Sequence record: NC_042013.1
Direction: 5' to 3' (one strand)
DNA: 64,000 nucleotides
Position 1 is the first letter of the stretch, and every line of letters starts with the position of its first letter. Under the pieces are notes generated by a model. The model saw only the letters and a list, made by a program, of their open reading frames with translations, was not told the origin of the DNA and searched no databases. The translations under genes were made by a program, and so were the position numbers. Positions 242 to 64,000 of the stretch are shown here, one piece after another.

Positions 242-739
242 CGTTTTATTGACATCAAAAAGATACCACGCACAGTTGTCTTTTCCAGACATGTTCGTGG
301 TTTCGTCCCATTTCATTCGGCCAATTGCAACTATCTCTTTGAGATATTTGTCGATAATTGGTGCTGACGATACATTGAACAACCAATCGCTATCAAATAA
401 AAACCACGTTGGTACAAATTCGGCATAATGTGAAATCAATGGATGAAGTAATTTTCTATCCCAAGGCGGATTTGAAATGCAATAGTCTACGCCTATAAAA
501 TCATCAGCGGTATAATCAAACGCGTCACGTTGAATGATATCCTCCCGTTGTGGTTCAATATCTGTCATACCAACGCATTTCAAAAACGTCAATTGATCAA
601 CTAAGTCCCCACGACCAGCAAACGGTTCAATGTATGTTGAACGTTCTTTAATATGCGGTTCTAAGGCTTTACCTGCACGCAAATCAAAGGTGCGGTAATA
701 ATCTCGTGGCTTACGCTCAAAATCTGATCTTTTTCCCAT
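215..739 (-). CDS. DNA amino (N6-adenine/N4-cytosine) methyltransferase
   Basis: SAM-binding motif I EPFAGRGDL, catalytic motif IV SNPPW; start set at MGKRSDF. Confidence 0.85.
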   Translation of the reverse strand: MGKRSDFERKPRDYYRTFDLRAGKALEPHIKERSTYIEPFAGRGDLVDQLTFLKCVGMTDIEPQREDIIQRDAFDYTADDFIGVDYCISNPPWDRKLLHPLISHYAEFVPTWFLFDSDWLFNVSSAPIIDKYLKEIVAIGRMKWDETTNMSGKDNCAWYLFDVNKTSTTFHSRR

Positions 740-790
740 AATGTTTTTCTCTATTGACTTTATGTTACTATAATATATGATATAAATTGG

Positions 791-4332: not shown

Positions 4333-4407
4333 GGGAGTGTGGCTGACTGGTAAAGCAGATGCCTTCAAAACATTGAGATGCGGGTTCGATTCCTGTCACT
4401 CCCACCA
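4333..4407 (+). tRNA. tRNA with UCA anticodon (opal-suppressor / Trp-like, atypical)
   Basis: Acceptor GGGAGTG/CACTCCC, D arm, loop CT-TCA-AA (TCA 4365-4367), T loop TTCGATT, encoded CCA; C31xA39 mismatch. Confidence 0.85.
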
Positions 4408-20426: not shown

Positions 20427-20502
20427 TGGAGGCGCGGGTCAGGGTCGAACTGACATAAATCTCCTTTGCAGGGAGCTACCTAACCATTCGGTGCACCGCG
20501 CC
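20427..20502 (-). tRNA. tRNA-Cys (GCA)
   Basis: GGCGCGG/CCGCGCC acceptor, loop CT-GCA-AA, U73, encoded CCA. Confidence 0.95.
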
Positions 20503-62715: not shown

Positions 62716-62967
62716 TTAAATATCCTTCTTTAGTTTCTTGTTTCTACGAACTGCTTCATTACGCTTCTTACGACGAATTTGGCCTTTCGTTTCGTGGTAC
62801 TCATTTTGACGAAGGTCTTTGACAAGACCCTCTGACGAAACACGACGCTTCAAAGCTTTGATTGCTTTTTCCAAATTCGATTTCGCTTCGTTTTCATTAT
62901 TAGCTAGACGAACAGGGACTGTCAACCCTTTTTTGTTCAATCTATCGCCATAACTATGTGCACTCAT
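62716..62967 (-). CDS. rpsU: ribosomal protein bS21 homologue
   Basis: LEKAIKALKRR..SEG..K..R..EYHE....RRKKR.EA.RR. Confidence 0.85.
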   Translation of the reverse strand: MSAHSYGDRLNKKGLTVPVRLANNENEAKSNLEKAIKALKRRVSSEGLVKDLRQNEYHETKGQIRRKKRNEAVRRNKKLKKDI

Positions 62968-63114: not shown

Positions 63115-63402
63115 ATGTTCAAAACTGAAATCGAATTCAAAACTGAAAGTGATCGGGATGAATTTAACGCTCTCCTAGAAGCATATACGAACAAATACCA
63201 TGACGATGGAGTACACGATGAAATTCAGAAGCTCTCACGTGTATATGGATCAGACGATAACGTTCATTTTAATGGTAATTTTATCAATGAGGAAAACGCA
63301 ATTCCTGATTCGAGCAAAGACTGCATCATTATTGATGTTAATATTCCTAAAGCAACATCAGGTGATGCACTTCGTTTTGCTCTAATAAACCAGCTAACAT
63401 AA
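63115..63402 (+). CDS. hypothetical protein
   Basis: SD AAGGA. Confidence 0.6.
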   Translation: MFKTEIEFKTESDRDEFNALLEAYTNKYHDDGVHDEIQKLSRVYGSDDNVHFNGNFINEENAIPDSSKDCIIIDVNIPKATSGDALRFALINQLT

Positions 63403-63419
63403 AGACACAGATATCCATA

Positions 63420-63692
63420 AAAGGCATAAAGCATAATCCTTTATAAAATCTATATAGATTTTTAAGGAGTTGATAGTCAATAGCAAACGCTAACGCTTAC
63501 TTGCTATTGCTATCTTCAGGAAAACAAAACGCTTACGCTTATCTGTTTTCCTTTTTTTAAAATACTGAATATTAGATTTTTTGATAATTTTAATTATCTA
63601 TAAAGAATAAGAATATAATCTTTATATTCATAGATCAAGTTTTTATCCCCCCGCTATCAAAACGTAAAAAAAATATTTGATAGCAGGGGGAT
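63420..63692. other. AT-rich non-coding hairpin cluster (candidate replication origin)
   Basis: 18-bp palindrome, two hairpins with ACGCT(A/T)ACGCTTA loops, 17-bp IR. Confidence 0.45.
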
Positions 63693-63700
63693 TTTAATCT

Positions 63701-64000
63701 TTGACATTCATGAGTCGCGGTAGTAAACGAGAATATTCGTGGCGGTTGTCCTGTACCCTTCAAATTCTCGGAAAATCTGCATTTCTGCAACAACGGGTTT
63801 GTACGGCATTTGTACATTATATAGCGTCTGCTTTACTACGCAACACACGCTATACAGAAGTTTTCACTTTCGGAAAGAGCTTCTTCATTTCACTTGCCAT
63901 CAGCAAGGTGAATCTTTCATTATCTTACTAGGAGATAATACGGCGTTCCATCGTTTTAGGAAATCCTGCCTACGGGCCTAAAACGAACTACATTCCGGTC
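63701..64000 (+). ncRNA. candidate large structured RNA, truncated by window edge
   Basis: TTGACA-17-TAAACG promoter followed by at least 6 contiguous hairpins with plus-strand G-U pairs. Confidence 0.5.

Follow-up and report, generated by a model that had tools for sequence, protein, structure and literature searches.

The gene-free DNA at the end of the 64,000-nt stretch that we analyzed (the window) carries the larger part of a conserved structured element of ~460 nt, and we consider it probable, at roughly 0.6, that this element encodes a previously undescribed large structured non-coding RNA of Rhizobiaceae jumbo phages, expressed as its own unit from the minus strand. The element occupies window 63641-64000 plus positions 1 to ~97 of the deposited genome record, and its carriers are the Atu_ph07 lineage, Sinorhizobium phage Phosso and syntenic metagenomic phages. 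We demonstrate below that its copies share a common multi-helix fold, of about 15 helices including long-range ones, which is maintained by compensatory changes. In this respect the original prediction of a large structured RNA-type element, apparently undescribed, is supported, its structure being demonstrated by covariation in 11 homologs; the promoter, the start and the strand that it proposed are not supported.

Window position 64000 corresponds to position 490380 of record MF403008.1 (Agrobacterium phage Atu_ph07; circular, 490,380 bp), and the final 601 bases of the window are 100% identical to the end of the Atu_ph07 record. The element lies within an 841-nt gene-free gap that spans the record start (window 63403-64000 and record 1-243) and is bordered by a gene for a 95-aa hypothetical protein (63115-63402, plus strand) and the phage IF3 gene (record 244-747, minus strand), with genes for an S21 homolog (62716-62967, minus strand), ClpX, ClpS, HSP20 and thymidine kinase nearby. 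As had been predicted, the element is cut by the window edge, extending ~97 nt beyond it; because only these ~97 nt lie past the window end, the element is ~460 nt long and not GOLLD-sized. Its start had been placed at 63701, whereas conservation already begins at the hairpin at 63645-63692. The prediction had also stated that there is no credible ORF, and we agree: the longest are of 76-80 codons, those in the gap do not exceed 80 codons when read through the record junction, none is retained in position or frame among relatives, and we found no conserved reading frame across the family members.

Several other observations concern this neighborhood. The 83-aa product of window 62716-62967 (minus strand), annotated in the deposited record as a “hypothetical protein”, has a ribosomal protein S21 Pfam domain, and together with IF3 beyond the window end this S21 homolog makes up a small translation-gene cluster. 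The 91% relative has an additional 75-aa ORF between IF3 and its terminator (L015-L018, 4518-4745). Near-identical strains (L005/L006/L009/L010, ~1390-2142) have a 250-aa ORF beside the topoisomerase large-subunit gene, with a faint-to-weak Pfam match to GIY-YIG endonucleases, that is missing in Atu_ph07 and may be a homing-endonuclease polymorphism. Near-identical copies of window 63403-64000 occur in honey, biofilm, tobacco, plant, lake-water, marine-sediment and bovine-gut metagenomes, and from this range the Atu_ph07 lineage seems widespread. Sequencing runs labelled as RNA also contain pieces of the element's region; the contigs from four such runs are few, low in depth and directionless, cover genes and gap alike, and derive in some cases from relatives.

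We found 11 distinct copies of the element, using a covariance model and nhmmer, which gave E-values of 1e-73 to 1e-136 for the 10 copies other than that of the window. Two are paralogs within Atu_ph07, one belongs to a ~91% relative, one to Sinorhizobium phage Phosso and seven to metagenomic jumbo-phage contigs with the same gene order (L077, L078, L079/L080, L086, L087, L141 and the divergent L085). Lengths range from ~450 to 490 nt, and pairwise identity between groups falls to ~45%. A search with the IF3 protein led to Phosso, whose 682-nt gap is syntenic and alignable with the Atu gap, and a pattern scan identified paralog B of Atu_ph07 at ~record 383,216-383,690, outside the window, which is 73% identical overall to paralog A; the window itself holds no additional copy. 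Exact-protein look-ups yielded near-identical strains with contigs that cross the record junction (L005, L006, L013) and a relative lineage (L015-L021) with flanking proteins 83-85% identical to those of Atu_ph07. In this relative lineage the gap DNA is 90-92% identical, compared to 80-83% for the flanking DNA, and the element itself is 93.4% identical; that is, the element is better conserved than the adjacent genes, and 12 of the substitutions in the close relative form 6 compensated pairs.

Other searches were made on a broader scale. IMG/VR locus searches by single protein returned nothing beyond the phage itself, and two patterns scanned in viral contigs gave chance matches plus paralog B. 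All 12 matches of a pattern scan of JGI metagenomes were chance matches in G+C-rich coding DNA, and none of the 52 matches of a pattern scan of 185,579 species genomes was confirmed by the covariance model. Similarly, neither an unfiltered covariance model nor a 10-sequence HMM detected a homolog in the syntenic gap of the more distant jumbo phages L081-L084, and a likeness seen there by eye finds no support in either. This gap, at the same place as the element, is a gene-free stretch of 560-575 nt (L081 12424-12998, L083 12408-12968) with a C-run/G-run hairpin, and it may hold a replaced or highly divergent element.

The conservation of the fold was evident in three covariation tests. In the 3′ domain, aligned with the covariance model, 95% of cells were paired compared to 78% in shuffles (0/500), and 20 of 29 pairs had changed on both sides compared to 11.3 in shuffles (again 0/500). 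For a strand-symmetric test, limited to pairs predicted on both strands, 10 full-length copies were aligned simply with MAFFT; it comprised 75 pairs in 14 helices, of which 89.1% of cells were paired relative to 74.3% in shuffles; double changes were present in 45 of the 75 pairs, with 24.5 expected from shuffles (0/500), and slid controls, in which partners were moved by 1-3 columns, were paired at only 38-46%. The minus-sense set of 11 copies (70 pairs in 15 helices, long-range ones included) was 93.2% paired, compared to 76.6% in shuffles (0/500) and 36-46% in slid controls, with double changes in 41 of the 70 pairs. In each test none of the 500 shuffles matched the observed pairing, double-change counts or covariation score, and the slid controls overall gave 33-57% pairing against the 89-95% observed. 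As 11 related sequences represent perhaps 4-5 independent lineages, the shuffle statistics overstate significance, but the slid controls, together with the numerous different pair types found at single positions, make conservation of the fold hard to doubt. Compensatory changes thus keep the base pairs beyond what either shuffled or slid controls give.

Could such symmetry be a feature of the DNA alone, in the form of a packaging site, cruciforms or palindromes bound by proteins, or could a small gene have been missed? Inverted repeats are inherently symmetric, both strands of the element fold, and the deposited record begins here. However, long-range and nested pairings covary, loops and wobble pairs differ between the strands, the record start is accounted for by an exact repeat of 83 nt that is described below, and no ORF is retained in place or frame, so that we regard explanations of this type as very improbable.

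All seven stems named in the original prediction are present in the minimum-free-energy fold of 63725-64000, whose plus-strand version (-70.5 kcal/mol, z -2.9) is more stable than 200 of 200 dinucleotide shuffles. We describe the parts of the element, which is defined by homology to 10 other copies and by covariation, in window coordinates, and all of its helices are assigned to the minus strand, the sense that we favor on evidence given below. The long terminal hairpin, P1 (63645-63692), occurs in 11/11 copies and its inner pairs covary; in the minus sense an invariant run of six G residues, followed by AUAA, pairs with a C/U run, and neither this arm nor the distance of P1 from the remainder of the element varies. 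The first of the predicted stems, at 63728-63770, is a helix (63728-34/63764-70) that encloses a sub-domain in the minimum-free-energy fold, and its arms read CGAGA/UCUCG in Atu, CGGAA/UUCCG in Phosso and CGGGA/UCCCG in L079. H3 (63778-63789) is a 4-bp hairpin with a GNRA tetraloop in the minus sense whose stem has six different sequences, with pairing kept in all. In H4 (63801-63820, predicted at 63800-63816) 5 of 6 pairs covary, and a T-A to C-G double change is present in the 91% relative. All eight pairs of H5 (63824-63853, predicted at 63820-63854) have changed on both sides, three adjacent pairs having changed together in the close relative, with a two-pair intermediate in L021.

The next predicted stem, 63856-63884, corresponds to a two-step hairpin, H6/H7 (63855-63887), that has covarying pairs and a 3x1 internal loop, and whose apical loop in Atu can be closed as C(GAAA)G in the minus sense. 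H8 (63894-63906, within the predicted 63889-63912) has a stem in which 4/4 pairs covary and a five-base loop, UGAUG in the minus sense and CAUCA in the plus sense, that is identical in 10 of 11 copies. The hairpin at 63919-63939 is specific to the Atu group: two A-T pairs have become G-C pairs in the 91% relative (AT/AT to GC/GC) and one pair is changed in copy B, while in the Phosso group the hairpin is missing here and L141 has a shorter, unrelated insertion. The last predicted stem falls within 63941-63997, where H9 (63941-45/63991-97) closes H10 (63951-60/63978-86) and an inner 4-bp hairpin; the inner five pairs of H10 covary and are paired in 100% of cells, and H9 is nearly invariant with one covarying pair.

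From which strand would such an RNA be made? The original prediction asserted that the G-U pairs work only on the plus strand, a claim that did not survive, for the reverse complement of 63725-64000 also folds well (-73.2 kcal/mol, z -2.5), that is, equally well or better. As both strands fold stably, folding alone is uninformative on strand. Taking the other lines of evidence together, we think it likely that the RNA sense is the minus strand of the window, in which case the RNA would start beyond the window end and its 3′ three-quarters would lie inside the window. In the minus sense the H3 loop is GAAA in nine copies and GCAA in L141, with a 7-nt loop containing GUAA in L085, and the H4 loop is GCAA in three copies and GCGA in L141, whereas the plus sense would give H3 and H4 the loops UUUC, UUGC and UCGC rather than GNRA. 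Also, P1 is a continuous 11-bp helix in the minus sense, with 97.5% of cells paired and U-G opposite the invariant G run in 9/11 copies at one pair and 3/11 at another; in the plus sense these positions, and likewise positions in several other helices, become conserved A-C mismatches. When pairs were filtered by Watson-Crick covariation, a strand-neutral criterion, minus-type wobbles numbered 20-26 compared to 13-14 of the plus type. On a first, cruder alignment of 7 sequences a symmetric wobble count was even, 29 to 32; such counting favored neither strand on the early alignments and became informative only with more members and the loop motifs. A hairpin past the window end has an A-U to G-U to G-C series (Phosso, L077, L079), as read by eye from the alignment. 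The consensus energy is -144 kcal/mol for the minus and -126 kcal/mol for the plus sense, and each of the seven members tested is more stable in the minus sense by 8.5-22 kcal/mol. The minus-sense RNA would be purine-rich, with unpaired positions A-rich and C-poor. The region in L085 has its best promoter-like site (TTGACA-18-TATACT, 11/12) just upstream of the element in the minus sense, and the element there is co-directional with IF3 and S21 in that sense; for the Atu and Phosso groups, only weak or unclear promoters were seen in the minus sense.

The opposite orientation had been proposed originally, as a plus-strand RNA from the promoter TTGACA-17-TAAACG that would start near 63737 and run out of the window. 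The letters are indeed there (TTGACA at 63702-63707 and, after 17 nt, TAAACG at 63725-63730, plus strand), but we judge this site not to be a promoter. Our sigma-70 criterion was TTGACA, 16-18 nt and TAnnnT with a position conserved in relatives, and the scan did not report the site because the final base of its -10 hexamer is not T; it is absent from paralog B and the Phosso group; and since homology begins at the hairpin at 63645-63692, it lies inside the conserved element. What, then, is in keeping with a plus-strand RNA? The listed stems do fold on that strand, a U-G in the inner hairpin of H10 that fits the plus sense only is kept in 8 copies, and L079 has plus-sense neighboring genes. 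Upstream of P1 the Atu group has a TATAAT-like box, in the same group a terminator-like T6 run (record 59-64) follows the most conserved block, and P1 with its T-rich tail is also terminator-like in the plus sense. Set against these are the loops and the A-C mismatches described above, the worse folding energy in 7/7 members tested, and a plus strand that is C-rich and G-poor, and we therefore hold the plus-strand RNA originally proposed to be unlikely.

On the minus-strand reading that we prefer, the RNA would be transcribed as a separate unit starting beyond the window end, at about record 70-100, and would end at the G-rich terminal hairpin P1 (63692-63645), whose invariant 3′ arm is G6-AUAA. 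There is no T-run after P1 in the minus sense. The resemblance of P1, alone among the helices, to an intrinsic terminator, a G+C-rich stem followed by a T-rich tail, is seen in the plus sense of the Atu group, and unlike an intrinsic terminator P1 has no T-run beside it on either strand in the Phosso group, L085 or L141, although its position and arm are kept. In six Phosso-type copies the 160 nt of minus-sense flank past P1 are C-rich and G-poor (C/G 2.0-2.5) and resemble a Rho loading region; the corresponding flank of the Atu group is ~90 nt of ~85% A+T. In the window this is the spacer at 63558-63640 (~85% A+T; the corresponding 100-nt bin of L005 has a G+C content of 0.15), between P1 and two plus-strand hairpins that flank the element at 63481-63557. 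The loops of these hairpins repeat ACGCT(A/T)ACGCTTA, and the second is followed by T7 and is terminator-like for the 95-aa gene; the repeated loop may be a protein- or RNA-binding site. A related loop, ACGCTAAAGCA, with a T-run is present at the matching place upstream of paralog B (L064 4070-4120). Elsewhere in the gap, the loop of a hairpin at record 96-102 varies among near-identical strains (AACAAA, AATAAA, AACAAT, AATAAT, GTTGTT, ATTCAT).

Divergent unannotated ORFs lie on either side of paralog B, with promoter-like sites arranged back to back. In the surrounding “gene-free” 2.2 kb (record 382156-384352; L064 3157-5353) there are at least five plausible ORFs, of 94-119 aa, that lack annotation. 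The longest exact match between the paralogs is a stretch of 83 nt that covers window 63986-64000 and continues to record 68, and which is identical to record 383570-383652. Because of this repeat many Logan/de Bruijn contigs, and the deposited record itself, break here, and it accounts for the recurrent assembly break in the Atu_ph07 lineage.

Does the element belong to an mRNA, either as the structured 3′ UTR of the IF3 unit or as the 5′ leader or attenuator of the next gene? In Atu_ph07 it lies directly downstream of IF3 in the minus sense, in the Phosso group it lies at the end of the IF3 gene block, and a possible 94-aa ORF follows paralog B in the minus sense. Nevertheless, a strong terminator separates IF3 from the element, the flanking genes vary among members and between the two paralogs, and the element of L085 has its own promoter-like site, and a cis-acting role of this kind seems to us improbable.

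To much the same degree we doubt that the element is a replication-origin module, in which a structured primer transcript would end in an invariant G run next to a stretch that melts easily or bears iterons, and the two Atu_ph07 copies would be two origins. ColE1 RNA II and the R-loop RNAs of T4 oriF and oriG are likewise structured transcripts of some hundred nucleotides with a G-rich part by an A+T-rich stretch, and origin primer transcripts can occur in more than one copy per phage genome. In keeping with this, in the Atu group the invariant G6 at the 3′ end of P1 (minus sense) is followed by the ~90 nt of 85% A+T and in the Phosso group by CTATT(T)GGTGGGAAA-like repeats, there are two element copies per Atu_ph07 genome, and the element is placed between gene blocks. 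Unlike those origin RNAs, however, the element has no skew signal, as there is no GC-skew turning point at it, and no common unwinding element, because the flank differs between the groups, A+T-rich in the Atu group but C-rich in the Phosso-type copies; nor is there a linked initiator gene. Moreover, a 450-nt GNRA-bearing fold kept over such divergence exceeds known primer RNAs, and we know of no origin primer RNA with an elaborate fold across distant relatives. The short direct repeats of the form CTATT(T)GGTGGGAAA, with variants, were seen beside P1 in L022 (11580-11760), L077-79, L086, L087 and L141.

If the element is an RNA of its own, is it one of those already known? We took membership of an Rfam 15 family to mean a score at or near the gathering threshold of its covariance model. 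At that threshold nothing in the window matched at the element, the window's only Rfam matches being tRNA genes elsewhere, at 4333-4404 (plus strand) and 20430-20502 (minus strand). When Phosso, L085 and the Atu gap read through the record junction were compared with Rfam at permissive thresholds, the only matches were sub-threshold ones to single hairpins, the best at 28 bits relative to a threshold of 54, and the GOLLD, ROOL, OLE, raiA, RNase P, 6S and SRP models gave no family match to the element. ARAGORN found no tRNA or tmRNA in L005 4400-5700. The original prediction had found no match by eye to tmRNA, RNase P or a group I/II intron, and Rfam and ARAGORN came back just as empty.

Individual candidates were considered as well. 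A group I/II intron was rejected as the element is intergenic, has no split ORF around it and matches no intron model. A minus-sense GAUGAG-stem-GA suggested a hammerhead ribozyme, which has an invariant CUGANGA ... GAAA core around three stems; here the U of CUGA is missing, the position of the third core purine is occupied by C in the Atu group and by A in the Phosso group, and no Rfam hammerhead match was obtained. A CsrA-type sponge was dropped since its GGA motifs are not conserved; to our knowledge, CsrA is mostly absent from these hosts. Likenesses to the P4 of RNase P and to h45 of 16S rRNA were also dropped, being by-eye resemblances only.

The element is closest in kind to the large ornate RNAs ROOL, GOLLD, OLE and raiA, which it resembles in its hundreds of nucleotides, many helices, GNRA-type loops and long-range pairs, in its lack of an ORF and in its conservation by covariation. 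It differs from them in that three diverse members match none of their Rfam models even at E<=5-10, in that it occurs in alpha-proteobacterial jumbo phages rather than in Firmicutes, rumen or lake sequences, and in that, unlike ROOL/GOLLD-type RNAs, it has no tRNA genes beside it in Atu_ph07. GOLLD and ROOL, which phages often carry, are reported to be still without a known function (PMC12286853). The candidates of an IMG/VR-wide screen are similar to the element in being intergenic in phages and found by homology and covariation, but as their motifs measure 29-151 nt, the element is about three times as long as the longest (PMC10690425); the main text of that report makes no mention of jumbo phages, Agrobacterium or rhizobia. 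The Atu_ph07 paper contains no mention of intergenic, non-coding, tmRNA or promoter, and the AP-J-162 jumbo-phage paper, which credits AP-J-162 with a single tmRNA and a single “misc RNA” and Atu_ph07 with neither, contains no mention of non-coding, ncRNA or intergenic. Literature searches on structured RNAs of jumbo phages found no description of the element. Apparently, then, it is a new family within a known kind, that of large ornate RNAs of the ROOL/GOLLD/OLE type.

The transcript would be expected to persist as a stable RNA, with its GNRA tetraloops making tertiary contacts, and our guess is that it serves as a trans-acting RNA scaffold or a component of an RNP made during infection. Judging from the gene neighborhood only, its role is possibly tied to the IF3 and S21 genes of the phage, as its steady location among these translation genes suggests a link to the takeover of translation, although paralog B sits elsewhere. 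That the element represents a new class of large phage RNA working with the phage's own translation factors, which could act on the ribosome or on RNA metabolism during takeover or could self-assemble into a ROOL/GOLLD-like RNA-only nanostructure, is a more tentative idea still, to which we give a low probability.

Few large structured RNAs combine strong covariation with the lack of a known function, and the earlier ones have each proved biochemically interesting, as ribozymes, RNP scaffolds or RNA cages. The element described here has a cultured, tractable pair of carriers, Atu_ph07 on A. tumefaciens C58 and Phosso on S. meliloti, in which expression, knock-out and structure are directly testable. 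It would be the first such class tied to alpha-proteobacterial jumbo phages, and the phages that carry it encode IF3, S21 and Clp components of their own as well as dozens of tRNAs.
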